Origin: Syncephalis fuscata S228
Lineage: Eukaryota > Fungi > Zoopagomycota
Direction of reading: 5' to 3'
Assembly: GCA_025786725.1 (NCBI GenBank)
Contig: JAHLTZ010000008.1
Coordinates: forward strand, 744,001 to 808,000
Length of the DNA stretch: 64,000 nt
Shown here: positions 1 through 56,555 of the stretch, one piece after another
How positions within the stretch are numbered: position 1 is the first letter of the stretch
Layout: the number at the start of each line of letters is the position of its first letter
Position numbers and translations under genes: made by a program
Notes under the pieces: generated by a model
What the model saw: the letters and a program-made list of their open reading frames with translations, nothing else
What the model was told of the DNA's origin: nothing
Database searches by the model: none

Positions 1-69
1 TATAATATTATAAATAAATAAGTAATAATACAATAATAATGATATCAATAATTGCTATTGCTTATTTAC

Positions 70-1770
70 CTGAGGATTAGGACGCTCAACATGTTTAATA
101 CGCATGCATTGCGTAATAATACCCATCTGCGTCTCTGCCACTTTTTTAATTCTACCATAGAAATCAGTAGTATTTTGAAAGAGGGCAAAAATAACCTGTG
201 GTGGTGCCTTATATTTTGACTTGGCCTTTACAAATGCTTGTTGGAGTATGTGGCCGGGATCTCCTTGTGCATTGCCGTAGATAATAGGCGGGTCTTTTGC
301 AACTACATTCATACCTTTCTGGGTGAACTGAGCTCCCATAAATCCAAAGTAATCTTGTATTTGACGAAGCGGGTAATATTTCTCTGGCACGAATGCAATC
401 ACAGCCCACGAACCAATAGTCACTGGTACGAGTAAGCGTTTACCTTGCAATGACCACTGACCATCATTTGGTGTGACCACGGCATCTCGACCAGTGGCTG
501 GATTGTATGCAATACGTGGTGCTTCTAATTGCCGGCTACGAATCGTGACCATTTTAGGATCGACACGTAGGCCAAAACGCTTCAATGTACTGTCGTTGGC
601 AAAATCCACAATACGATGGCAGTCATTAATCTTATTACGACGTGCATGTGGTTTATCAGCTGCGTATTTTATCATGTCAGCCAACTGCTTCTCATCCAAT
701 TGGCCCCTAACGCGCTGATTGGGTTCAATCACACAAACTTCCATTGGGAATGTTGTTCCTTTGCTTGTAACACTATGAAATAATAAACTGTATTGGCATC
801 AACTATTTAACAATGGCTATATATCTTACATGCATGGCAACTGTGGAAACCTCAATCGATAGTTGTATCGTGTTTGGAAGTAACTTGCTACATTGGTCTT
901 TTCTTTAGTATCGCCAATTGAGAATACCGTGTCCTTTGCTGATTTTCGCGTCAGACTATGGATTCCATAACGTGGCTTAAATCCTTGTCGATGGGTTACA
1001 TGAACCTTTATGTTTTTGAGATGCCGTTCTAAGCCTTTGATTGAGTTATTGTTTAGTCTGCTTGCTATTCTTTCAGGTCCATTGACATAAAGTGCATCGG
1101 CAACAAATTGAATCAGCGGTCCTTGGCGGTAAAAAGCACTAGTTGTCGTATTGATGTTTAACATGAGACCGGTTTCACCTGGCCGCACTGTCATGTAATA
1201 GCCGCGCCACGCTTCTACACCACCTGGTAAAGGTGATGAATCCTCACCCGTATAAAGTGACCGACCAATTGATAGAAACCGACTTGCAGCCATATGGCGG
1301 AATATAACCTCCAAGGCCATAGTGGGTAACAGAAGTGCTTGTGGATCACGTACTTTGCCCGAATAATACGCGTTGATCAATGACATGTTGGCGACGGCCA
1401 CTTTACGAAGCATTACTTTAAAAATACGTGGTTTTCTTTTACCGCTATTATTGCCATCCGATTCGGGTAATAAAACGTCGACGCTTAACGCATCGCCCGC
1501 TGCCATTGGATGTAGTGAAAACGCACTGGCCGCACCATCATACGCCAAGTACGCCTTGCCTAGCTTGTCACGGTGCACTACGTGTAACTGCTCGATAACC
1601 TGTCTTTTTACATCTTTATCTTTACACTCTTTATTGTTGATACTGATCTTGACGTCCAAATGAATAAGATTGCCTGAAGGTATGTTACTCAATTTAAAGT
1701 GATTGGCAACTACATTTCCTGGTTTGCCTATTTTAGCATAGCCAGGACGGCTTAGGAGTTGTACAGACAT
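70..1770 (-). CDS. ago: Argonaute protein (N, L1, PAZ, L2 and MID regions; PIWI lies beyond the window start)
   Basis: Exon 1770-830, GT-AG intron 829-773, exon 772-70, next donor at 69. Spliced junction reads FPQLPCIVTSKGTTFPMEVC (PAZ end). Also RPGYAKIGK..VVANHF, GVEAWRGYYMTVRP, LMLNINTTTSAFY (L1), GQWSLQGK, YGRIKK...GIITQC (MID). Confidence 0.96.
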
Positions 1771-24500: not shown

Positions 24501-24926
24501 AACAACTCAATATTACGTTAAATGAACTAATAAGTAATGATAATAACAATGGTAATAATGGTAGTAATTTATTAAATTATTTGATGGCCCAAATAATAAT
24601 TTTTTAAAGCTCGTTTAACTAAGTTGGAAGCATTTCAACATCGATTGGGAGCATTTTACCTGGACCCTGATCTGTTTAAAAATAATTAATTTATATATTT
24701 GAAGTTATTTTACTTTCACATTTTTTATTTACTCATTTCACTTCCTTTTTAAATATTTTTAAATACAATTAAACATCTATTTATCACTATAAAATGTATA
24801 ATATTACATCCAACATTAATTAATTCATGTGTAATTATCAATACAATAATGTAACTAATTAATTATTTTTATTATTGCTTTAATATATATATATTGTTAT
24901 TTATGATATTGATTGTTCAAAATGCC

Positions 24927-25340
24927 ATTTATTTAGTCAGATTGGCTATAAGGGAAATGACTGTTTAATAGACGACATTTATAATAGTTATATTAATCTT
25001 GAGTTTACATTACAAATATGCCCAAAATGCAATACTAGAATATTAGAAAATAGAAGAGACCATTCAGATGTAATAATCCATATTGTACGTAGATGCAACA
25101 ACAACAAATGCGGAATGACATGGAAGCACAATCATATGGCTTCTATTAATATTCAATCAATCTTTTTATACATGGCTAACAACAATAATAGTCGACCTCA
25201 ATGTTTCAATGAAATTAAATAGTATGCTACATTCTTTAAATTAATAACAATGTTTTAATAAAGAGTAATATAACTATATTGTGCATAACAACGACATGAC
25301 TCTGATTGGAACGAATTTTACTTTGGGAATTCAAGATGCA
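24927..25340 (+). mobile_element. Fanzor/TnpB-like nuclease C-terminal relic with conserved downstream tail (copy A)
   Basis: Stop-free frame ending at TAG 25220-25222: LQICPKCNTR..IHIVRRCNNNKCGMTWKHNHMASINIQSIFLYMANNNNSRPQCF. Zinc ribbon CxxC...CxxxxC plus a RuvC-III-like W-N-R-D-x-x-A-x-x-N-I pattern and terminal RPxxF. Confidence 0.75.
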
Positions 25341-25390
25341 GAAGTCATGCTGTTATGTATAACATAGTTATATTACTTTTTATTAAAATA
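25251..25390. repeat. ~50-bp imperfect inverted repeat with ~38-nt spacer
   Basis: ttttaataaagagtaatataactatattgtgcataacaacgacatgactc versus the reverse complement of 25341-25390, tattttaataaaaagtaatataactatgttatacataacagcatgacttc. Confidence 0.85.
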
Positions 25391-25530
25391 TTATACATGC
25401 TATGTATTATTCCATTTTTAGCTTTTAACTTTAGTACTTGTTAATTGAGTTAAATAAAATGCTGCATCATATAAAATATTGTGTGTTATTTAACATTATT
25501 ATACAATTTAATTAAATTTATTAATCAGTA

Positions 25531-25730
25531 TAGTGTAGTGCGGTTATGTCGGTACCTAAGCCCAGTACCTAGGCCTCTGGGATATCACCCATGGCGGTAT
25601 GAGTTCCGTGGACGTTCGCTTCTATTGCTTGATTTGATAAACAAAATCCCTCTACTCAGAAGGGCAAGCACTGTAGGTATTCTCTTACAGATGCTCGAAT
25701 CTGCCTAACTAGAACGCTACGTAACTTTTT
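25531..25730 (+). ncRNA. Candidate structured Pol III-type non-coding RNA, family unassigned
   Basis: GC-rich island in AT-rich DNA. Ends pair (GTAGTG/CGCTAC, GGTTA/TAACT), several internal hairpins, G-U pairs favour the + strand, ends in TTTTT. Confidence 0.5.
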
Positions 25731-26935
25731 AACACTTAATACAAAATAAAATACAATTCAAAAGGCTTTTCCTTCTTTATTCAAAAGTGTGTTTTGAATC
25801 CTCTTATTATGCATCAAAGATACAGCAAACACAACACAGCAATGCCGAGCTACATATATCAATTTTTATTAATAAAAGAGCTGTAACCATACCGACAACG
25901 GTTATAGACAGCGTATAGCCAATATATAATAAAATGATAAACATTATAATGAATACGCAATATTGAACGAGATTAGTAATGTTCAAGTTATTGAGCATAT
26001 ATGTATGTGCATGAGCAAAATAAGTCAATTTTATTAATAATAGTTCTAGAACAAAAATAAAAACAGTTTTGGATAAAGAAAGTCTAGACAAGTATAAGAT
26101 GATATATAAAATGATAAATGTACGGTAAGAAAACATATAAACCGATGTTAAAGGTACAGTGTGTATACATCATCATGTTCAATAGATTGGACGTTATTAA
26201 ATTTAGTCATTTGATCACCAAATCATAATAAATAACTAATAAATTGTTTAATGTAAAAAGATTATCTTTATTTAATTAATAAATAATGTAATATATACAA
26301 TTCATAAATTAAATGGTATTGTACATAAAAAGACTATGAATAAATTGAAATACCAATGAGTGAATTGTTCAAGTGGTGAAATACAAGAAAGAATAAAAAT
26401 CAATAGCATAAAAGCAAATATATTCATAAAACAATGTCATTAGTAAAATAAGAAGAATGGATATCAATGCATAAACAAATGTCATTATCATAGAACATAA
26501 TATTACAGTTGACAACTCTAAACTTTTAAGCATTAGATTCAGTATATAAGCAACAGCTTTTTATTGTAAATGATGATTTAAACACAAATTAATCTAATCA
26601 GCTCGTCAACTATTTAAATCACTACAATCGATTGCGTAAAATAATTTACTACTCTGGGGGATTAAAGTAGATAGTTAACTAAAAACATTTATACATTACA
26701 ATATCGATGTTAATTAACATTGAAATAATCAACCGTTTACATTTCGTGGCAGCTATACTGCAAAGCGATTAACATGAAAAACGCATAGTACATTCTTTAA
26801 ATCTGCCATTATACTGCAAATAGGTGCAAGTATAACAGCATGTTGTTGAAGAAACAAAGGCTATTCGAGCAATGAAATAAAGCAAACATATCTTAGAGTG
26901 AGTAATTAAGTAATTGTGTTGTCAAACATAATCCT

Positions 26936-28403: not shown

Positions 28404-31400
28404 GATGTTTGTCGCTCACTTATTAATCTTTTTTTCTCTTTCTCTTGTTTCTTCTATTGCTACACAGCGGGGTCAGAAAAGCGGGGAAAGAACAAGTCGG
28501 ATTGAACTGAGCCGGTAAATAAGCGGGCGATCAATAACACCAGAAATACGCAATTCAAGCCACAGTCGTACACAATAGGAAGCTGACGTCTAGCGCCGAA
28601 CCGGTACTGTTCTTAGCAAAGATTGATATCACGTGCCAAACCAGCTGTATTACGCTGGAACGTAATTGTCTATAGGAATAAAAAGCAGTGCTGCTGTATA
28701 GTGAAGGATAATATTAAACGCCTAATCAAATGTTATACCAAAAATTTAGTATCTATAGACTGTTTATTCAAGCGGACAAGAACGAGGTTGAAATATCAAA
28801 ATCAAAAGTCGTTACTCGATAGGCAAGGCGTAATAATGCTCAACCAGTTTTGGTACCAAAATAAATGTCAGCTGAATTGACCAGCATGCCGACTTTGGTT
28901 TATTGTATCACCATCACGTCCACCACAGACCATGAACGAAGAAATAAACCATCAAAAAGTACTTACCCGTGCGTATCCAAAAGAATATAGTCGGATATTA
29001 TATAGCTATTGTTGCTATTTAAGTAGCGGCTACGTAAAATGAGAACTACAATCTAACGCTTGATTGAGAGCACAGTATTGAGTCGTTATATAGTGTGAGA
29101 GGAGAGTAAACGGGAATAAACGAAAAATAATAGCGTTAAGGCGTGTAACGGTTAGGTTAGGTTCAATAAAAGGCGCCGAGAAAATGAAGTAAGAAGCAGG
29201 CCAAGGAGCGCAACGTTAAGCTTTGGCCGTAAATATCTGAAAAAAAGTTAGTAGGATGATGGAGACGGAATAATACTGGTGTAACAAATATCTTGAAACG
29301 ACGGCAAGTTTCGTGTAGGATATTTGTTTGGAGAATTAGGAAAATAGAAACGAGAAAGATAGAAAGAGTGGGAAATAGAGCGATAGATAGAAGGAGAGGA
29401 AGAAAAGAATACGCAGTATATCAACGTATAGTTGGACAAATAGTGCCAATGCTATTGGTGCCGATAATAATAGCAGTACTAATCGTAATGGTAATAAAAA
29501 TGGAATGATTGGCGATGGCAAAAGAAAACATCCGAATGCAAGACGGCGTCCGCGTGTCTATTTTAACCATGTTCTCGTCCTAAACAACTACAAAATGCCG
29601 CATTGTTCATTCATTGGACCCATTAGGGTAACGAGCTGATACTGATTACGAGGATGGTCGGCGATGGCAGCAATAACAGAAATGGAAATGCATGAGCAGC
29701 AGCAGCATTTGTAGGCCATTTACTATTCAGCTGCACACAGCAGTGTAATGCATGTGCCGTCCATTCGTTGGTCTATTGCTTCTGACATCTTTGATTTCGT
29801 CGTTTGATTTGTACGCAAAAGGCGGAGGCACTAACGTGTGCCAATACGCGTTTCGTATGCATGCGGGCCAGTTTTGCTGAAAAAAATTCCTAGCATGTGC
29901 CCCTTGTGGCCTTGGGTGCGACTGTTTTCCCTCTTCACTTGCTTGCTTGCTACTACTCACTTGCTAGTGTTTTACTGCTTTAGCCGCTAAATGATAATAA
30001 AATGACATGATAGGCCTAAAGGGTCGAGTTAAAAGCTTAGTTGGGACCGCTGAGTGTTTATTTGACGATTTCAGTGAAGTATACACGTGCACATTGCTTT
30101 CATGCAACCAAAAAAACGATGTCTTGCGCGATTGGTAAATTTTATTAGACACGCTTCACGGACGTGCGTGGTTGGTCTTACTCACCCGTGTTTACAGACC
30201 AACGACGTCATTGTCGTAACGGTGCATGAGCGTGCGCAGACAAATAGAAAATACTGGGTCTCAAAAAGCAGTATTTCATGACTACTTTGATCTTAGCAGA
30301 AGGCCTTGTTCGTAAGTTTTTCATTTAATAGTACATTAACCATAAACGACTTTTTACAGAAAATATTTATATTATAGATAATGCTTATTTGTCCACAAGG
30401 GGCTCGTATACAATACATCGATTCTAATCGCGATAACATCGCTTAAAGCATTGTTTAGCAAGTGGTGTACTACCGATAAAGCAATAACAAACTCTTCTGA
30501 GGTTGCACGGTTATACAGTAACCCGTAATGGCAAAAACAGACGCTATAAATTTATGTTAGTACTATTAATCTGCTTTAAAACTGTTGCTATCCTTTTTTC
30601 AATTTTTCATATTGATTAAACCTTTTGTTTTTGTATCGTATTTAAAACACTCTTGCTTGATGTTACACCAGTTGTACCAGTATTTAACTTATGGTCTAAT
30701 AGAAATCACAATGTAATAAATACAATAACACATGGTTACTGTATTTTATTTCATATTAATAATTACATGGGGCACAATGAGTGAAAGAAAAGATTTAAAA
30801 TGTAAGTTTACAATTACATCTTTAGTATAACTGGTCAAATAAAACGAAAAACATATGCTGAGTGCGCAACATCTACGTAAATTAAACGTTATTCAATAGT
30901 TATAGCACAATATAATGATAAACTAATAATAATAAACTGCTTATTGTAAAGCTATGCCATGCTAATAAAGCAGCCACTAATAAAGCTATTGCTATAGTAG
31001 ATATGGTTGTTTTTCACGCCTATTCTAGCCATTACTACGAAACTATTTTATTTTAGGTTTCCAACTTCAAGATGAAAACAAAAAATCTATAACTCAATAA
31101 TAAAACGTCCATCGGTTTTTAACACTGAGAAGTGTCGTTTGTTGAAGCATCACTATGTCAACTCCGTTTGAATTAGTTGAAGTTGAGCCAGTCTGTACTA
31201 TTTTCAATATTCGATATTAGAGTTAATAGATGTTAAATAGCATTTTCATGTTACTTACAATAAAATATAATAAACAGATAAATGTTAATCCATATTATTG
31301 TTGCAGTAAAGTATTCAAAGCATTATAATTTGATATTTAATGTCATTTACTATCCATCATCATGTTCAATAGATTGGATGTTATTAAATAGCCACTTTAA

Positions 31401-31677
31401 CCACAAATCATACTAAATGGCTAACAAATTTAATTAAATTGTATAATAATGTTAAATGATACACTATTTTATACAATAATGCAGTTTATTTAATTCAATT
31501 AGCAAGTACTAAATTAAAAGTTAAAAACGAAATGCTACATAGCATGTATATATTAGTGCAACAACACTAGCACAATCAAATAAAACAATTGACTAAATAA
31601 TTGCTAATATCATTACTAAAATAGCTAATGTGGTTGTAATTGTAGTAAATGTAGCTCATTGTAATATGTTAATATTT

Positions 31678-31890
31678 AGTCAATTTTTCTACACATGACG
31701 AACAATAACAATCAACCTCAAATGTTCCAAAGAAATCAAACAGTATGTTACATTATTTATTTAAATTAATTTATTAATAATATTTTAATAGAAAGTAATA
31801 TAATTATGTTGTGCATAACAATGGCATGACTTCAATTGAAATAAAACTTTGCTTTGGGGACTCAAAATAGGCGGCGCAAAGTAAAATTCA
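31678..31890 (+). mobile_element. Fanzor-like relic, 3' end plus tail only (copy C)
   Basis: Aligns to 25146-25340: aatatttagtcaatttttctacacatgacgaacaataacaatcaacctcaaatgttcc ... gtaatataattatgttgtgcataacaatggcatgact ... ctttggggactcaa ... gcaaagtaaaattca. Confidence 0.7.
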
Positions 31891-31971
31891 TTCACTATCA
31901 TTATGATGATGGTTAAAAATAATAAACTTGTTTGTCGCCTATTTCAATAACTAACCATAGTATTAGCCACC

Positions 31972-34957: not shown

Positions 34958-35460
34958 TGTAATGTGTTGTGTGTTAATGATTGTGAGAAGAAAAGGATAT
35001 TTTATTTAGTCAATGAGATTGATAATTACGTGCTATGTTGTTAATAAAGTCAGCGTGATCATTGATGTGTTTAATAACGGTCGTGCTGATATGTGATTTT
35101 CAACCTATGCTCATTTTAATGATGTACACGACATTGTTTTTATGGTTTTGCACACTGAAATGATATATTCTATTATTCAGTTATGCATAACGTATACGTA
35201 TTTAAATAAACTGTACATGGAAAGTATCAGAAATGCGAGTGATGCCATCATCGGCGCACTGTTTACTATCAATTTGATACTGTTCGTATTGTATTATCGG
35301 CCGATTATAGCGATTTAATCAAATTTAGCCAATATTTTATTTCAAACTATAATTTAATGGCTATATTAGATACAATTGACCATGCAGCGATTAAACTTTC
35401 TACACTTATACAGATGATCAGGAAAACTACACTGATTATTAAATATACAAATGTCTTGGT

Positions 35461-35900
35461 TGCATTTTACTTTGCTCCTACATCTGTCCCCAAAGCACAA
35501 TTCGTTTCGATCAGAGTCATGCCGTTATTATGCACAACATAGTTATATTACTTCCTATTAAAATACTGTTAATAAACTGATTTAAATGAAGAATGTAACA
35601 TACTATTTGATTTCATTGAAACATTTAAGGCCGATTATTATTGCTGTTGGCTATGTGTAGAAAGATTGATCGAATATTAATAGAAGCCATATGATTGCAA
35701 TTTCATGTCATTCCGCATTTGTTGTTGTTACATTTATGTACAGTGTGGATTATTGCATCTGAATGGTCTATTCTATTTGCTATTCTTCTATTATTACATT
35801 TTGGATATCTTTGTGCTGTAAAATCAAGATTGCTATAATTAGTATAAAAAGTAGTTTATTAAACAGCCACTTTTCCTATAACCAATCTGACTAAATAAAA
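35461..35900 (-). mobile_element. Fanzor/TnpB-like relic with downstream tail (copy B)
   Basis: Reverse complement aligns along 24927-25340. Reads ..IHTVHKCNNNKCGMT*NCNHMASINIRSIFLHIANSNNNRP*. Tail ends gctttggggacagatgtaggagcaaagtaaaatgca. Confidence 0.75.
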
Positions 35901-36491
35901 AAGTCAAATTACAATAGCCCCAGTGCCTTAAAAAGAAGTAAATTTGTTTTGATATTAATACAAAACGGGCTACGAACTAATCTTCAAAACTATCACGGTT
36001 ACACATATAGATTTAGTTGTCAATTGAAGCAAATAGAATATTCTAATGGTGCGTTATTCTACTATTTTAGTTGAGCTATCATGCTGTGTTGTATTTAGCA
36101 GCAATATAAAATTGAAAATAATAATACCAGAATTCACACATGCTATTTAGATTTCCATAGAAGGACATAGTTAACGACGATATATATTCAAAATAGGTAA
36201 TAGTCATGCTTTAGGCCATACTATTTTAGTCGAATAATCATGTCACATTACAATCAGTAGTCATTGAGGTATAAAAATAAACAAACTTGATGTTTCAAGT
36301 GTGCTATTTTGTATTCTACACTAATGAGCTTGACACATAATTTTGTATCAATGCCTGTTGAGTTCCAATCGGCTTGTGCCTAAATGATTATAAATTCTAC
36401 AATAGTTAGTGTTTTTCTTCAAATTAGCATACAACTTAGCGTTTCAAATTTTACTTAGAAAAAATATATAGACAAAAATTCTGTTTTCAGT

Positions 36492-37777
36492 ATGGTTAAA
36501 ATTGGTATTTTTGCTATTGCTGCTGCTTTTACAGCCATAATACTATCTAGCATACCAGCAAGTAGTTTCATGAACGAAGAATCTAATGGTAAATCACATA
36601 TTATAACCATCATTAATATTAACACATATGCATTACTAATAGATGAAATTCTATCTAATGGAGCTGGTAAAGTATATTTGGATGATCCAAAAAATCGAGA
36701 AAAGCTTGGATTGCCGGTGGATAGGCCAGTCAAATGGAGTTATGCAACTTCTGAAAAAAGCATTGGTTATACACAATGGAATAACAAAAATGCCTTTGTT
36801 AAATGCGTAGAAAGTAGTAATGACGCCATAGAAGAAACTAAAGCTTTTGAGGTAATGATTTTACTGGAGCAGAAATACCATTGACTTACATGATAGTTAG
36901 ATATTGATTAGACTCATAAATCATCCAAAATACAACATACCAGGAAAACACAATATTATGCATCCATTAAAACGATTTAATGTTCCGCATCCTAATTTCC
37001 CCAAAGAAACAAAAGATAACTGCTTTATCTACACGCGTGCTCCTGGTGCAACATTAAAAGAATTCATCATTGATAAAACCTGGCAACAGAAAGCTCAGTA
37101 TCTACCTCAAATATTTTATCAAGTAACGCAAGGTGAGTATTTTATATTCGAGCGATAAATCATTAATTGCTATAATTGAATATAGGCATGCTGTATTTAC
37201 GTCGAGTTGGTATTATACACTATGATATAGATCATGAAAGTAAGTTGCATAGTAATTACAAACAGCATGCTAATTAGTTAATGTAGATGTCATGGTGCAT
37301 GTTAATACTAAAAACAATATGGTTCAGGCAACCATTATTGATTACGACTGTGTAAGTTTTATCTATGGCAGCATCCAAAAAACTTTAGAATTGGCACCAT
37401 ATACAAACCTTGATATGATAAATGGACATGACCAAAAACGGTATTGCAACATCGGCAATTCACTATTTAGTACAACAATTCATTTTGCAATTACCGAGGC
37501 AGTGATTATTGATGAATTCGATGACATAGTTCAAGGGTCATTTGAAATGATAAGCGGCATTTTTGATGCAACAGCAAAAGGTTTATCGGTTTCACCTGAT
37601 AAGCGTTATGGAGTCGTATATGATAGAAAACCTCAATATCCTAGTAAAATGGATGAACCATATGCAAAAGTATTATATCCTCTTGTTAAAGCCATGAAAA
37701 AACTATATGATAGTAGCTATGGCTGTGCAATACCAAATGATGTTTTGGCTTTATTAGGATTTGCTAACATGAAATAA
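36492..37777 (+). CDS. Secreted protein kinase-like protein (copy 1)
   Basis: Signal peptide MVKIGIFAIAAAFTAIILSSIPASS. Introns 36589-36642, 36852-36900, 37133-37185, 37240-37286. AFVKC (beta3 Lys), EETKAFE (alphaC Glu), IFYQVTQGMLYLRRVGIIHYDIDHENVMV (HxD..N), ATIIDYD (DFG equivalent). Confidence 0.85.
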
Positions 37778-38095
37778 ATTGCTTATTGAGCCTGGAATTT
37801 AATTGAATGCATTATGTGTATTTAAACTAACGTTGTTTACATTAAGTATGTATTTAATTTATTTTTCATTTGTACTGAAAATGTAGTTGTAAGCTAAATA
37901 GCCATGACGTTATTATGTACAATTGAAATATTAATATAATAAAATTCAAAGATAAATATGTCATTTATCCATATAGTTGCCGTAATTCACGCATATTTGT
38001 TGTAACAATCTTCTGTGCTTGTTCCTCTATAAACCATTACGCAATTATTATGATGTCCAGACGGAAATGTTACATAAATTGACACATTACAAGAT

Positions 38096-47361: not shown

Positions 47362-47632
47362 TTATTCGTATTCGTTTTTAACAGCGTTTGATACTATTTA
47401 ATTTCCATTTTCTTATTACTTGACGAATAACAGTTTATTATCCATTCATTAAAATAAAATAGTTATATGATTATATTAATATTTCAATTGTACATAATAA
47501 CGTCATGGCTATTTAGCTTACAACTGCATTTTCAGTATAAATGAAAAATAAATTGAATACATACTTAATGTAAACAACGTTAGTTTAAATACACATAATG
47601 CATTCAATTAAATTCCAGGCTCAATAAGCAAT

Positions 47633-48917
47633 TTATTTCATGTTAGCAAATCCTAATAAAGCCAAAACATCATTTGGTATCGCACAGCCATAGCTACTAT
47701 CATATAGTTTTTTCATGGCTTTAACAAGAGGATATAATACTTTTGCATATGGTTCATCCATTTTACTAGGATATTGAGGTTTTCTATCATATACGACTCC
47801 ATAACGCTTATCAGGTGAAACCGATAAACCTTTTGCTGTTGCATCAAAAATGCCGCTTATCATTTCAAATGACCCTTGAACTATGTCATCGAATTCATCA
47901 ATAATCACTGCCTCGGTAATTGCAAAATGAATTGTTGTACTAAATAGTGAATTGCCGATGTTGCAATACCGTTTTTGGTCATGTCCATTTATCATATCAA
48001 GGTTTGTATATGGTGCCAATTCTAAAGTTTTTTGGATGCTGCCATAGATAAAACTTACACAGTCGTAATCAATAATGGTTGCCTGAACCATATTGTTTTT
48101 AGCATTAACATACACCATAACATCTACATTAACTAATTAGCATGCTGTTTGTAATCACTATGCAACTTACTTTCATGATCTATATCATAGTGTATAATAC
48201 CAACTCGACGTAAATACAGCATGCCTATATTCAATTATAGCAATTAATGATTTATCGCTCGAATATAAAATACTCACCTTGCGTTACTTGATAAAATATT
48301 TGAGGTAGATACTGAGCTTTCTGTTGCCAGGTTTTATCAATAATGAATTCTTTTAATGTTGCACCAGGAGCACGCGTGTAGATAAAGCAGTTATCTTTTG
48401 TTTCTTTGGGGAAATTAGGATGCGGAACATTAAATCGTTTTAATGGATGCATAATATTGTGTTTTCCTGGTATGTTGTATTTTGGATGATTTATGAGTCT
48501 AATCAATATCTAACTGTCATGTAAGTCAATGGTATTTCTGCTCCAGTAAAATCATTACCTCAAAAGCTTTAGTTTCTTCTATGGCGTCATCACTACTTTC
48601 TACGCATTTAACGAAGGCATTTTTGTTATTCCATTGTGTATAACCAAGGCTTTTTTCAGGAGTTGCATAACTCCATTTGACTGGCCTATCCACCGGCAAT
48701 CCAAGCTTTTCTCAATTTTCTGGATCATTTAAATACTCTTGCCAGCTCCATTAGACAGAATTTTATCTAACAAACACATATTTATGTCAGTACTAATAAT
48801 AACTATAATATGTAGTTTACCATTAGTTTTGCCGCCTATAGCACCACTTATTGGTATGCTGGATAGGGTCACAATTGTACAAGCAGCAGCAATAATAAAA
48901 ACATTAGTCTTGATCAT
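47633..48917 (-). CDS. Secreted protein kinase-like protein (copy 2, inverted paralogue of 36492-37777)
   Basis: Signal peptide MIKTNVFIIAAACTIVTLSSIPISG. Same exon structure; ORF 48252-48506 is identical to 36904-37158 and ORF 47633-48118 differs from 37292-37777 at two residues. Confidence 0.85.
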
Positions 48918-50500
48918 ATTGAAAACTGGATTTTTGCCTATGTATTTTTTTTAAGTAGAATTTGAAGTGTAGAATTGTTTGAAATTTTGAAGATAATTGC
49001 AGATTATTGTAGAATTTATAGTTAGCCGATTGTAACTCAGCTGACATTGATAGAAAGTATGCTGCTTATTAGTATGAAATGCAAAATGACGCACTCTAAG
49101 CATCAATTTTATTTATTTCATTCCACGATGGTTCCTAAATGCAACGTGGCATGATGATTAAACCAGAATGATATATTTCAAAGCATGGCTATTGCCTATT
49201 TTGAATATATATAGTCATTAACATAGTATATGGAAATTCAAAAGGCTTAGCACGTGTAACTTTCGGTACTTTTTAAAAATTTGTTAATCACCATATTTTA
49301 TTGAAGGGAGTTTAGAAAAATAGATTGTTTTTTAATTTATTGTAATAAATTCAATAAATAAAATAGACCGTTTTAAAATTTATTTATTGAAATACACCTT
49401 TTTGAAAATCTATTAAATGTCTACCAAACTAGTTAAAGAAGCTATGTTTAACAGTATCAAAAACTGAGTGTTGTTGTTGACGAGTTTAAGCTTGTTAATG
49501 GTTGCAATTTTAATAGGAAAAATAGTGATTCAAAATTACAATTATCTGTCTTTATAAGATTATTCTAGCAACAAATGTCAGTTTGTTTTGACTGCCAGAA
49601 AGCAAAAAACTAGCTTGTTGTTAAAAATTATTCAATGCAATCTTAAGCATTTTAATGGCTGTCCATATGCTTCTGGTAATGATATTATTAAATTTATTAT
49701 TAAATTATTAAAATACTGCAGTTACATTTTTAGATGTAAAACCAAACTATGTACAAATAAAAGTATTAAGTATGTACATATTTGATTATTTAATATACAC
49801 TAACAATCGTAATAGCTTAATAGGTGTTATTATTTTTTATTACAAAGCTTAGTCTGCCTTTGATACAATAAACAAGAATGACATTTTACTGTTCTATAAT
49901 TCCGGACAGGGTCTTGTGAAAGTGTGACCAAGAGATATACCATGTGATTGGATCACCAGTTAAAGTGCATGTGATTGATTACAAAATAATATACTATCGG
50001 ATATTAGCACCGATTACTAGTAACAAATGCCTATTACGACAATATGACGTGTAGCTACTTGTTAGTTGTAAGCATATGAGCAGTCATCTGAACTAATATG
50101 CTGCGCTAATGATCAAATACTACAAGGCATTCCAGTTCTATTATTAGCTATGTTTACTATATAATAATAGCTTTATTCAATATCAATAAAGAAATAATCA
50201 AGTTTCTAGTCCAACATTATTTCTACTTAGTGTCATACAAGTTATTCAGTTTATTATAGTTAAACTGTGGTAATTAACGACCAATAAGGAATAGTTTTAT
50301 TATAAAAGCAATACAACCAAACAACACATTGTATTCTGAGCGTTAATGTAAGCGTTAATAAGCATCAGAAATTAACGTTATAGGATGGCGACAGGATAAT
50401 GTGTTGCTTGGTCATCTAAGTTGCAATTTTTAAAACTAGAAGCGTAACAATGGTGAAATTTAAAAACGACGTATATTGCTGATTTTTTCTTTATTCAAGC

Positions 50501-51260
50501 AAATTATATAAAAAACAATGATAAATATGTTTAACGGCTAAAGCACCAGGTTGCAGAGTGTGCTAACACCGATGGTATGAGCTGGTGTTAATTTTTGGTG
50601 TTAAAAAGGCGTTTTTAATTAATTAATGTTATCAATAAATGGTGTTGAGTGCGCAATCAAAGTATTATTAAATATTGCTATGTTGCACCCATTTACCCTT
50701 CCACCTATCTTATAATTAAACCATTGGCAATTACCAATTGCCCATGTTTTCTCAAATATGCTGTAGTCATTGGTACGTATTGCCAGCTTTAAGTGACTCT
50801 AGATTTGATTTATAGCTTTACTTTGCCATCTGGCAAACATAGAATAATGGTACCTTTTTCTTATCAGATAATGCCTTGGCGTGTGCCCTGTATATTTGCC
50901 ATATTGCTGACGCCGCAATACTTTGATTTCTAGAATGGATTTGTTCCATACCCACAGTCCATTCAAAACATCCGCCAGCTCTAGCGGTATTGATTGGCAC
51001 GGTGGTGTACAAATCCGGTCCAAAAATTTATCAACCACCCCCAAAAATTCCTAAATGTGTTTACACCCATAAAAGCAGCGTTGTAATGTTTTTGTGTATG
51101 AAAGGCATATTGAACACATTGGTTATTTTGTACTTCATAGCACCAATTGCACAATAGGTTGCCATATACATATATATATGGTTTGTACCATTGTTTGTAA
51201 GTTTGTCTTCAATAGTCATAGTTGATACAAAGCCACGTCTTCATTTAATGGTTCTAATTG
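50501..51260 (-). mobile_element. Non-LTR retrotransposon (L1-like) 3' fragment, ORF2 C-terminus
   Basis: Decayed zf-RVT-type finger MCSICLSYTKTLQRCFYGCKHI*EF, followed by ASAIWQIYRAH and FEKTWAIG, with stops and frameshifts. Confidence 0.7.
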
Positions 51261-52757: not shown

Positions 52758-52990
52758 TATTAAATGCTGTATTGAAACATTAGCATTAGTATTTTCAAGC
52801 TTTATTTGCGTAATAAATTGCTCTATTAATGACAGACAACTTAATATAATCAAATACGTTATAAATTTTTATAATTATACAGTGTATACTTGCTGATACA
52901 AATGCTGTATTATAAACAATTTACAAACAACGACATGGCGCGGTCATGTATTTTTTTAAAATAGTGTCAATTGCCATATTTTATTTAGAT

Positions 52991-53460
52991 AAAATTTATA
53001 AAAACAATTTAAATATGGTTAACGGCTAAGCACCAGGTTGCAGAGTGTGCTAACACCGATGGTATAGCTGGTGTTAATTTTTGGTGTTAAAAAGGCGTTT
53101 TTAATTAATTAATGTTATCAATAAATGGTGTTGAGTGCGCAATCAAAGTATTATTAAATATTGCTATGCTGCATCCATTTACCCTTCCGCCTATCTTATA
53201 ATTAAACCATTGGCAATTACCAATTGCCCATGTTTTCTCAAATATGCTGTAGTCATTGGTACGTATTGCCAGCTTTAAGTGACTCTAGATTTGATTTATA
53301 GCTTTACTTTGCCATCTGGCAAACATAGGAATAAATGGTACCTTTTTCTTATCAAATAATGCCTTGGCGTGTGCCCTGTATATTTGCCATATTGCTGACG
53401 CCGCAATACTTTGATTTCTAGAATGAATTTGTTCCATGCCCACAGTCCATTCAAAACATT
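52991..53460 (-). mobile_element. Second, more 5'-truncated copy of the L1-like 3' fragment
   Basis: Near-identical direct repeat of ~50501-50970 (aacggctaagcaccaggttgcagagtgtgctaacacc ... cacagtccattcaaaacat). Confidence 0.8.
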
Positions 53461-53822: not shown

Positions 53823-54486
53823 TGTTACTAATTTACCTGTATAACTATGGTGTAAATTGCGCTATTTACTAAATGTGGTAAATAACTTAATTAGCAATAA
53901 TTACATCACGTGATTGTTCCCATTTCTGGTAATCGTCAGGGTCCTTACAAAGATAGTCGTGCTTTCAGCCAAGATACGACGATCATACTATTATAATTGC
54001 TTCTAATTCGTAGCAGGAAACACAGCGCCTATAAATATTTGCGATCCACGGCCCCATATTACTTATTAAAGTAACACTGGCCCCATATCGCTTGAAGAAG
54101 AAATTGAACAGACAAGCCGTTCAAGTTCTTCCTTCGCAGTATTCAAGACCATTTACTATAAAATGGCAACTATGTTTCTTAATCTTAATAAACATTATCT
54201 TATCTTGGTTTAAATTCTTTTTTATTTTATTTGAATTTTGAACCTTTTGATCATTTCAGTCTTGCAGTGATTGCTAGACTGAACTGATCTTTTTATCTGA
54301 GTTAACAATATTCTAGTCATTTATTCTACTTCTGTGGAAATTATTAATTAAAGGTTAATAATCTTTATTAATAAAAACAATTAAGTAAGTCTTATATAAC
54401 ACTAATTACTAACATTATAGGTCACTCAAGACCAAGCATAATATTAGTAATCTGTTTATTATTCTACTCTTAGTGGAATAGTAACA
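53823..54486 (+). repeat. 5' LTR
   Basis: TG...CA ends, TATAAAT at ~54030, AATAAA at ~54188. No difference from the 3' LTR seen by eye. Confidence 0.95.
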
Positions 54487-54488
54487 TT

Positions 54489-54506
54489 TGGCGAGCACAC
54501 CAGGAC
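54489..54506 (+). promoter_or_regulatory. Primer-binding site complementary to a tRNA 3' end (Arg-like)
   Basis: TGGCGAGCACACCAGGAC begins 2 nt after the LTR. Its complement GUCCUGGUGUGCUCG-CCA resembles tRNA-Arg(ACG) 3' ends. Confidence 0.75.
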
Positions 54507-54568
54507 CTGGTAAAACAGGTCCACCGGCCCCGAAAGATCTCCTGTGCAAATAAATAAAGCATTATGCT

Positions 54569-55900
54569 ATGGACGGCCCGGAAAACTCAAGAGTAAGAAG
54601 AACTCCATTATGGACAACAGGCTACACCACAGATACAAGATACAAGTACAATGATTATTATCTGCCCCATAAAACAATGGACTACCACGCAAAAATTGAT
54701 GATAGCATTCCGTTATTCAACAGTTTAATTAAAGACGAAGATCCAATTCTGTGGCTGGAACTATTTGAGCAAGGTGCTAGACGGAATGGATGGCTAGAGT
54801 ACGAAAAACTAGCGAAAGTATCATTGTATCTGGAAGGACGTGCAGCGCTGTGGTTTTACGATGTAGAAGATTGGATCCAAACATGGAGAGAAAGCGATGA
54901 TTTTGGTCATTATTCAACCAATTCATTCTATGGAAAATTCTACGCAAAGTTTATTACTCCAAGTATAGAACGTCTTTGGCTAGAACAATTTCGATATTGC
55001 ACATTTGTAAAGAATGATAGTGTTACAACATTTGCTAAACGGTTAAGCGAAATACACAAACGTTGTACGCTATATCTAAATGTTAGTGACGCTGAACTGA
55101 TCGATCAATTTAAGCAAAATTTATCTGTTGTAATACGGGAAAAATTGTTAAGACATTTAGATTTTATGGAACGCGAATATCAAATTCGACAATACAGCTT
55201 TGATACAATCGTTAAAATCACTCAAAGAGTGGAGTTAAACCACATTAATGAATATGGTAGCCTACCATATGACTATTCATGTGAACAAATTGATCACGAG
55301 CCGTATCATTGCCATTACGCAAAATCAATTTATATGCGAGAATGGATATATACGTCTGTTCACCAAATTCGTCACAAAGTACAACCAAAGTCAACAGCGT
55401 GTCAGCCGACAGTACATATTGTCAACAAATGTCCGCCGAATCAAACTGCCTCAGACAAAGTAATTGATACTAAGCAACAAGAAGATATAGTTGAATATGA
55501 AGGCACTAATAATATCAATTCAAGTACTACGTCATATGATTTGCAAGTTGATTCAACAATTGTCGATAAAATACAACAAAGGTTAATATCATGCAACAAC
55601 TACATCGAGCTAGTAAACAACAATGTAGACAAGTTCGATGAGATAAAATTGAATGCTACTAAATTGGTTCGGCTTAAACGCAATGCCGAGAATATAAATA
55701 TAAATTATATATTGCATTCGAATAACTTGCCATTATTGTCAGCTTTCGACAACTACAATTATGGCATCTTTATGTTGGATAACAGAGGTAAAGGAAGCGC
55801 TAAACCATACGAAGAATTATCTTTGTCCAACTTAAAACATTCTTTGTGTTATGGACAATGCGAGGACGCATTTTCGTGTGGTGCAGGGGAATGTTACTAA
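54569..55900 (+). CDS. gag: Retrotransposon Gag (capsid) protein, 443 aa
   Basis: DPILWLELFEQGARRNGW..EKLAKVSLYLEGRAALWF and DSVTTFAKRL..LIDQFKQNL are Ty3/Gypsy capsid-type motifs. Stop codon lies inside the 3' LTR. Confidence 0.88.
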   Translation: MDGPENSRVRRTPLWTTGYTTDTRYKYNDYYLPHKTMDYHAKIDDSIPLFNSLIKDEDPILWLELFEQGARRNGWLEYEKLAKVSLYLEGRAALWFYDVEDWIQTWRESDDFGHYSTNSFYGKFYAKFITPSIERLWLEQFRYCTFVKNDSVTTFAKRLSEIHKRCTLYLNVSDAELIDQFKQNLSVVIREKLLRHLDFMEREYQIRQYSFDTIVKITQRVELNHINEYGSLPYDYSCEQIDHEPYHCHYAKSIYMREWIYTSVHQIRHKVQPKSTACQPTVHIVNKCPPNQTASDKVIDTKQQEDIVEYEGTNNINSSTTSYDLQVDSTIVDKIQQRLISCNNYIELVNNNVDKFDEIKLNATKLVRLKRNAENININYILHSNNLPLLSAFDNYNYGIFMLDNRGKGSAKPYEELSLSNLKHSLCYGQCEDAFSCGAGECY

Positions 55901-56555
55901 TTTACCTGTATAACTATGGTGTAAATTGCGCTATTTACTAAATGTGGTAAATAACTTAATTAGCAATAATTACATCACGTGATTGTTCCCATTTCTGGTA
56001 ATCGTCAGGGTCCTTACAAAGATAGTCGTGCTTTCAGCCAAGATACGACGATCATACTATTATAATTGCTTCTAATTCGTAGCAGGAAACACAGCGCCTA
56101 TAAATATTTGCGATCCACGGCCCCATATTACTTATTAAAGTAACACTGGCCCCATATCGCTTGAAGAAGAAATTGAACAGACAAGCCGTTCAAGTTCTTC
56201 CTTCGCAGTATTCAAGACCATTTACTATAAAATGGCAACTATGTTTCTTAATCTTAATAAACATTATCTTATCTTGGTTTAAATTCTTTTTTATTTTATT
56301 TGAATTTTGAACCTTTTGATCATTTCAGTCTTGCAGTGATTGCTAGACTGAACTGATCTTTTTATCTGAGTTAACAATATTCTAGTCATTTATTCTACTT
56401 CTGTGGAAATTATTAATTAAAGGTTAATAATCTTTATTAATAAAAACAATTAAGTAAGTCTTATATAACACTAATTACTAACATTATAGGTCACTCAAGA
56501 CCAAGCATAATATTAGTAATCTGTTTATTATTCTACTCTTAGTGGAATAGTAACA
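55892..56555 (+). repeat. 3' LTR
   Basis: Direct repeat of 53823-54486, followed by TSD CTAC. Confidence 0.95.

Follow-up and report, generated by a model that had tools for sequence, protein, structure and literature searches.

Decayed mini-elements carrying the tail of a Fanzor1 protein in the genome of Syncephalis fuscata

The window analysed here, a stretch of 64,000 nucleotides from Syncephalis fuscata (positions 744001-808000 of contig C350), contains an Argonaute gene (55-1770, minus strand; 63% to a protein labelled eIF2C), an intron-split ABC transporter gene and F-box genes, together with several repeats. The repeats that concern us most are three pieces of a single family, copies A, B and C, whose features are collected in Table 1. 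Elsewhere in the window, an inverted 1.77-kb duplication (36170-37940 and 47470-49222, 91%) carries ORFs of 130 and 161 amino acids, neither of which matches Pfam, the 161-aa protein being nearly identical between the copies, and a direct repeat of about 480 bp (96%) lies at 50490-50971 and 52980-53459. More repeat pieces, which often adjoin the mini-elements described below, are found at 25860-26680 and 31351-31554, and 25387-25523 matches 31422-31554 in inverted orientation.

Table 1. Features of the Fanzor-derived repeats in the window
Feature	Position	Strand	Remarks
Copy A, non-autonomous mini-element, subfamily 1a	24701..25347	+	89% to family consensus over consensus 14-661
Remains of the Fanzor1 coding region of copy A, with TS(L)Q, a CxxC..CxxC zinc finger, a decayed RuvC-III and RP	25004..25219	+	PF07282 E 3e-4; 46% over 76 aa to Thamnidium P0153
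RuvC-III motif codons of copy A, reading WKHN	25121..25132	+	Ancestral WNRD
Putative omegaRNA scaffold relic in copy A	25249..25347	+	Two hairpins in family consensus; last uses TIR as one arm
Inverted copy of right-end region, fold-back rearrangement	25341..25392	-	Private to A and its haplotype twin
Isolated right end, R2 type (subfamily 1c)	26560..26680	+	
Family 2 3' end, second Fanzor lineage, without zinc finger	31039..31373	-	78-80% to L063; worn TIR near 31039
Copy C, only right end of family 1, begins past RuvC-III motif	31669..31893	+	86% to consensus 450-671
Right 8-bp target duplication of B	35450..35457	-	6/8 identical to left one; two transitions
Copy B, complete 464-bp mini-element, both TIRs	35458..35921	-	
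Copy B motif codons	35694-35705	-	Read stop-N-C-N
Left 8-bp target duplication of B	35922..35929	-	

The unannotated stop-free frame that had drawn attention to copy A is real and contains the residues quoted for it (QICPKC, RCNNNKCGMTWKHNHMASINIQSIF and RPQCF), but it occupies 24929-25219 on the plus strand, so that its true start lies two bases from the 24927 first given. Nor does it stop at RPQCF, as had been claimed, but continues to RPQCFNEIK, and the ending of copy A after RP is due to a 1-nt deletion in this copy. The frame is the zinc-finger and RuvC-III end of a Fanzor1 protein. Before about 25004 the sequence does not code for Fanzor; comparison with subfamily 1b places here a deletion junction that took the RuvC-II Glu codon. 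The left terminal inverted repeat (TIR) of copy A is worn and the right one lacks its last 15 nt. BLAST with the copy A segment recovered both homologues proposed within the window: the match to copy B extends over 411 nt at 83% (E 7e-117), that to copy C over 203 nt at 76% (E 3e-32). Copy C, though, aligns only from the equivalent of 25146, past the RuvC-III motif, and two window copies rather than the claimed three bear on WNRD.

A family of three copies had been described, while the count across the 29.4-Mb, 371-contig assembly runs to hundreds. Searching the genome with the peptide gave 819 candidates, the best 150 of which were scored, all with E below 1e-20, and the left TIR has 121 genome matches at 0-1 mismatch against none for the control. 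Many copies are paired at 95% or more, with common flanks and on short contigs, as L001 (C350) is with L002 (C47). Such pairs with common flanks indicate haplotype duplicates in the assembly, which inflate the copy counts. The elements are non-autonomous, measure 460-860 bp and end in imperfect GG..CC terminal inverted repeats, both beginning with GG and having a common TACTTTGAC core. Similarity among 60 loci, which span 650-700 bp, drops sharply at these ends. Target duplications of 8 bp flank 5 of 14 pairs of ends, against 0.08 expected, and none was seen at 6, 7, 9 or 10 bp; TA, 9-bp and other duplication lengths are rejected, and the other nine pairs, among them composites and worn copies, show no duplication. 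Short, bounded by TIRs, duplicating their target, present in high copy number and devoid of a transposase, these elements are MITE-like. At least three deletion types make up family 1. Subfamily 1b (about 750-860 bp) is common, the best 40 of its 265 candidates having been scored, and keeps a GxA-like motif and the RuvC-II Glu; subfamily 1a (about 670 bp), which includes copy A, has the Glu deleted; and the 464-bp form is represented by copy B, a complete element with its 8-bp duplication. The hundreds of TIR-bounded mini-elements in the genome bear out the proposed spread of short Fanzor derivatives.

The assignment to Fanzor is supported, specifically as Fanzor1, by the PF07282 domain, by homologues from Mucorales and by matches to structure profiles. 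Copy A reaches only 21.4 bits with PF07282, below the curated cut-off of 26.3 bits, and its match to the Guillardia Fanzor1 is weak; L069 scores 34.6 bits, 26 places in the genome exceed the cut-off, and all 14 stop-free family pieces match the domain. A profile search of 1.84 billion representative proteins returned 307 proteins, the best named of which come from Thamnidium, Cunninghamella, Rhizomucor and Parasitella. The closest relatives are Mucorales Fanzor1 proteins reading WNRDHMASINIRS, and several homologues read WNRDHMASINIRSVFLHMA..RP, almost identical to the family consensus. The best Mucorales homologues carry DPG, TDG, DE-x-TS and WNRD, with TDG and DPG in the long ones. Compared with Fanzor1 and TnpB structures, as the original prediction had proposed, the homologue profile finds SpuFz1 (E 2.5e-19), PpFz1 (1.8e-13) and GtFz1 (8.4e-12) at the top, before any Fanzor2 or TnpB, the mimivirus Fanzor2 ranking behind these three, and the profile-profile alignment of the homologues with the family itself stands at 99.95%. 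Fanzor and TnpB proteins are recognized by a C-terminal [TS][TS]xx-C4 zinc finger-x(5,50)-RD arrangement (PMC3627910); the family has the finger and TS(Q), and RD is found in L050, L068, L074 and L078 as well as in the 1b consensus. In Fanzors the rearranged RuvC-II Glu lies six residues ahead of the first CxxC (PMC10711439). As for Fanzor1 versus Fanzor2/IS607, the TDG in the WED domain is seen in the nearest homologues, the relic itself lacking that region. Because the family shows the features set out in these two studies, we consider it a Fanzor1 remnant.

The motif codons of copies A and B are exactly those first reported, but the expectation that a consensus would restore WNRD failed: the majority of 49 subfamily 1a copies in the genome reads TGG AAT TGC AAT (WNCN), and a derivation of WNRD from the window copies is rejected, given this majority and the absence of the motif from copy C. 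At the Arg codon, CG stands in 6 copies, TG in 27, CA in 10 and TA in 4, which is the CpG pattern that had been proposed. The Asp codon does not follow it, since it is AAT in 45/49 copies and GAT in 3/49, and the alternative TG outcome is absent from all 49; neither are TGG to TGA and AAT to AAG, which were among the listed changes, CpG transitions. Given the near-uniform AAT and the missing TG outcome, the D to N change was most likely fixed already in the founder of subfamily 1a. That WNRD is ancestral nevertheless holds, as it stands in the four natural copies named above, in the homologues and in the 1b consensus, the latter built from five copies under a rule that favours C or G once 30% of them show it. 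Upstream of LTSQ, subfamily 1a departs from 1b, which reads IDEYLTSQ, and has no RuvC-II Glu; this residue is present in 1b (IDEYLTSQIC) and in families 2 and 3. The RuvC-I DPG, and with it a complete D-E-D triad, occurs in no mini-element, while the homologues have it. Thus, with D to N in the 1a founder, the Glu deleted and no RuvC-I, none of the three catalytic residues is left in copy A or copy B. By their sequence, the remnants of the protein cannot act as nucleases, since RuvC-I, WED and REC domains are all missing.

The 39 independent copies share 90% identity with the consensus and 84% among themselves, their divergence is flat by codon position (0.093, 0.115 and 0.081), and they are decaying neutrally. 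In every context the prevailing changes are C to T, at 14%, and G to A, at 16%. With 1b as outgroup, CpG sites have changed at 0.30 versus 0.16 for other C or G sites (p 6e-4), and CpG observed/expected is 0.62 in the copies versus 1.01 in the window. The CpG decay of the original prediction survives as a component of about twofold, but the view that decay is mostly CpG finds no support. A purely CpG process is rejected, as all contexts mutate, and so is a CpA-biased one like RIP, CpA being the lowest of the contexts. The CpG excess could plausibly be due to cytosine methylation, as a contributor to the decay rather than the main cause shown for it. A single locus of the genome, C268:178621-179883 (minus strand), matches C5 cytosine methylases, with family 1 copies about 1.5 kb off (L028, L037). 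The Argonaute gene in the window indicates that the host has RNA silencing, and this could act on the Fanzor repeats.

At the right end, the terminal 95 nt of the consensus give a folding z of -4.2, compared with +0.6 for the left end. Single copies have no fold signal (copy B +0.3, L068 +0.4, L076 +0.1), and an Rfam search of the right end returned nothing above noise. The right ends of R2 and of family 2 differ in sequence, yet in these, too, an inner arm pairs with the TIR. In Fanzor1 RNA the TIR forms part of the scaffold (PMC10711439), and the modelled consensus fold matches the omegaRNA described there, which makes the right end a putative scaffold.

Our searches give no backing to the idea of a working Fanzor persisting in the genome, as RuvC-I profiles match one broken locus only. 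The profile built from the RuvC-I region of seven relatives has its single match at C317:733825-734273, split between two frames and including a stop, and a second query led to the same place. It belongs to the one long relic, at about 733800-735600 of C317, which has a frame break and a stop around RuvC-I; the N-terminal part (L029) is frameshifted and weakly matches a region of an Absidia Fanzor (E 2e-4). An N-terminal profile gave two 58-codon matches on C46, close to 518400 and 582600, with no RuvC-I nearby. The RuvC-I and N-terminal searches thus found no intact Fanzor, a result to be read as a lower bound, since they scored the best candidates only, exon by exon, and a divergent, intron-rich intact gene could escape them.

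Two further Fanzor tails, families 2 and 3, are present in the genome, and family 2 ends in the same type of TIR as family 1. L061, L063, L065, L072 and L073 are two-tailed composites in which family 2 continues, at an identical point, into a family 1 piece in reverse orientation, and from its arrangement the segment 31039-31893, a family 2 end plus copy C, is probably a reduced composite of this kind. In a tree of Fanzor tails, a quick version on 130 columns with weak support and most rows without a taxon, families 1, 2 and 3 fall in three separate clades that each adjoin Mucorales (Rhizomucor and Thamnidium; Rhizopus and Absidia; Parasitella).

We hold with good confidence that a Mucorales-type Fanzor1 transposon gave rise to tail-keeping mini-elements, which were mobilized in trans to hundreds of sites and then decayed neutrally. 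A cut-and-paste DNA transposon carrying Fanzor1 would formerly have resided in the fungus. Internal deletions would have reduced it to the mini-elements observed, with both TIRs and the Fanzor 3' tail with its omegaRNA region, an order of events that we infer; the tail would have been kept because it abuts the right end. The Fanzor tail has hitch-hiked with the end of the transposon. The mini-elements would have been copied to hundreds of sites by a DDE transposase working in trans, most probably one of MULE-like type, the catalytic Asp codon having presumably changed already in the 1a founder. Once the burst was over, all copies would have entered the neutral decay seen today, with its C to T and G to A bias and its CpG excess.

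Could the peptide instead belong to some other, unrelated zinc-ribbon family, or come from a frame that is open by chance because the DNA is AT-rich? Weak Pfam matches to other zinc fingers (E 0.02-0.5) and the sub-threshold PF07282 score of copy A alone might suggest so, but the homologues align through the finger, the motif and the RP tail, and the longer copies have the upstream Fanzor motifs; together with the domain matches of all stop-free pieces, the structure profiles and the profile-profile result, this rules the reading out, and we give it practically no weight. A second possibility is that the mini-elements form a working bank of ghost omegaRNA donors that guide an intact Fanzor elsewhere in the genome. 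Each right end with its flank would supply a different guide, as proposed for the ghost Spu-1 loci, whose omegaRNAs function with SpuFz1 (PMC10432273), and the folding consensus right end, with the similar pairing in R2 and family 2, speaks for it. Nevertheless, this is very unlikely: the genome searches, in which the best candidates were scored, found no intact Fanzor, single copies no longer fold, and copies about 84% alike pairwise have no selection signal.

The nature of the mobilizer is less clear-cut, and we give a MULE-like DDE transposase about an even chance. There are 15 MULE matches in the genome, including C90:23312, C351:15327, C336:21728 and C339:307853, none of them near any of the first 100 of the 121 TIR matches, so that no transposase with these TIRs was found. 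A serious contender, somewhat short of even, is a DDE transposase from one of the other families that make 8-bp duplications (hAT, Merlin, IS4-like or P). Merlin elements combine 8-bp target duplications with short GG..CC TIRs, and the ends described here fit them; the genome has no match to the Merlin transposase PF12762 (its control was detected in 1/14) or to the hAT dimerization domain PF05699 (whose control was silent as well). hAT is the commonest Fanzor partner (PMC10530073), and an IS4-type Fanzor element has an 8-bp duplication, while the MuDr-type Fanzor elements of Mucorales, which are the precedent for a MULE partner, have 9-bp ones (PMC3627910). Against this, MULE duplications span 8-11 bp (PMC6446971), and the 8-bp duplication falls within the MULE/MuDR range. 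Eight loci of Mucorales or metagenome relatives have no transposase gene beside the Fanzor, and among them clear TIRs occur only in Thamnidium, with TIR-like repeats in L083. A further possibility, compatible with the MITE-like history preferred here, is that the three Fanzor lineages were gained horizontally from mucoralean hosts of this mycoparasite and not by descent. The three clades beside Mucorales, with 41-56% identity despite decay, and the resemblance of the Thamnidium element's TIR core to the left TIR of family 1 argue for it; old paralogous lineages would give the same picture, no other Zoopagomycota stands among the 20 named homologue clusters, and, because the tree is short and quick as well as weakly supported, we offer host transfer as a suggestion that we find doubtful. 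Still less probable is the fuller scenario in which the mycoparasite took three Fanzor1 lineages from its hosts, their tails riding on an undescribed family with short TIRs and 8-bp duplications, sometimes two back to back. If true, the genome would preserve in datable form how Fanzor was captured, passed between phyla and died out, and some of its right ends might even now be transcribed as guides.

The relic, though real, is dead, and other fungi are already known to have this arrangement. The closest precedent is ghost Spu-1 of Spizellomyces punctatus, about 550 nt between 30-nt inverted repeats at more than 100 loci (Saito et al. 2023, PMC10432273). Similarly, the elements described here are fungal, short, TIR-bounded and non-autonomous, with an omegaRNA region (putative in our case) at the right end and no internal transposase. 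In contrast, ghost Spu-1 has no ORF, occurs beside 19 full-length genes, produces functional omegaRNAs and makes TA duplications (PMC10432273), whereas our elements retain about 70-130 Fanzor tail codons and 8-bp duplications, are old, and have no intact gene that we could find. [quoted passage not shown] Their TIRs of 31-42 bp start with G in 2/3, although the sequences are unlike those of family 1, and they differ in being 4.5-5.2 kb long, with 6-9 copies, whole proteins of 1165-1245 aa and 9-bp duplications (PMC3627910). At the protein level, Mucorales Fanzor1 proteins (Thamnidium elegans KAG2230328.1, Rhizomucor pusillus KAL1926167.1 and Cunninghamella CAO3609169.1; structural relative PpFz1, PDB 9CF0) are 41-55% identical to the family 1 read-through. 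Both have the C-terminal run FGxA/G, APTK, DEYLTSQICP, zinc finger, WNRDHMASxNIRS and RP, while the N-terminal, WED and RuvC-I regions of the Mucorales proteins are all missing from the window copies.

Searchable papers hold no record of a Fanzor in Syncephalis, and our results extend the range of Fanzor1 to a new host, S. fuscata. They also present an end state of a Fanzor invasion, with hundreds of tail-only mini-elements and no working gene found. No new nuclease is gained, as the greater part of the protein has been lost; of use, as by-products, are a right-end scaffold that can be reconstructed, an 8-bp duplication type, and nearly whole relatives in public data. One of these, L083:2932-6327 (ENA ERZ26273096), encodes almost all of a Mucorales-type Fanzor1 in about 1000 codons, interrupted by one TAG ahead of the RuvC-II Glu, and is surrounded by TIR-like repeats; by its sequence, it should be far better suited than the S. 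fuscata genome for obtaining a working enzyme. The other, L084:4785-8098 (JGI 3300046454), is a long Fanzor1 with several stops and is 56% identical to family 2 in the tail.

Two other features of the window deserve mention. At 53823-56555, two identical 664-bp direct repeats flank a 443-aa ORF with a faint match to retrotransposon gag, the organization of a very recent LTR element without pol. Lastly, a GC-rich island of about 200 nt (25531-25730), 190 bp from copy A, ends in a T run, folds with a z of -1.9 and matches nothing in Rfam; the haplotype twin L002 has the same sequence in the middle of the island, with flanks at about 95%, and the island is possibly a small RNA gene that does not belong to the Fanzor repeat family.
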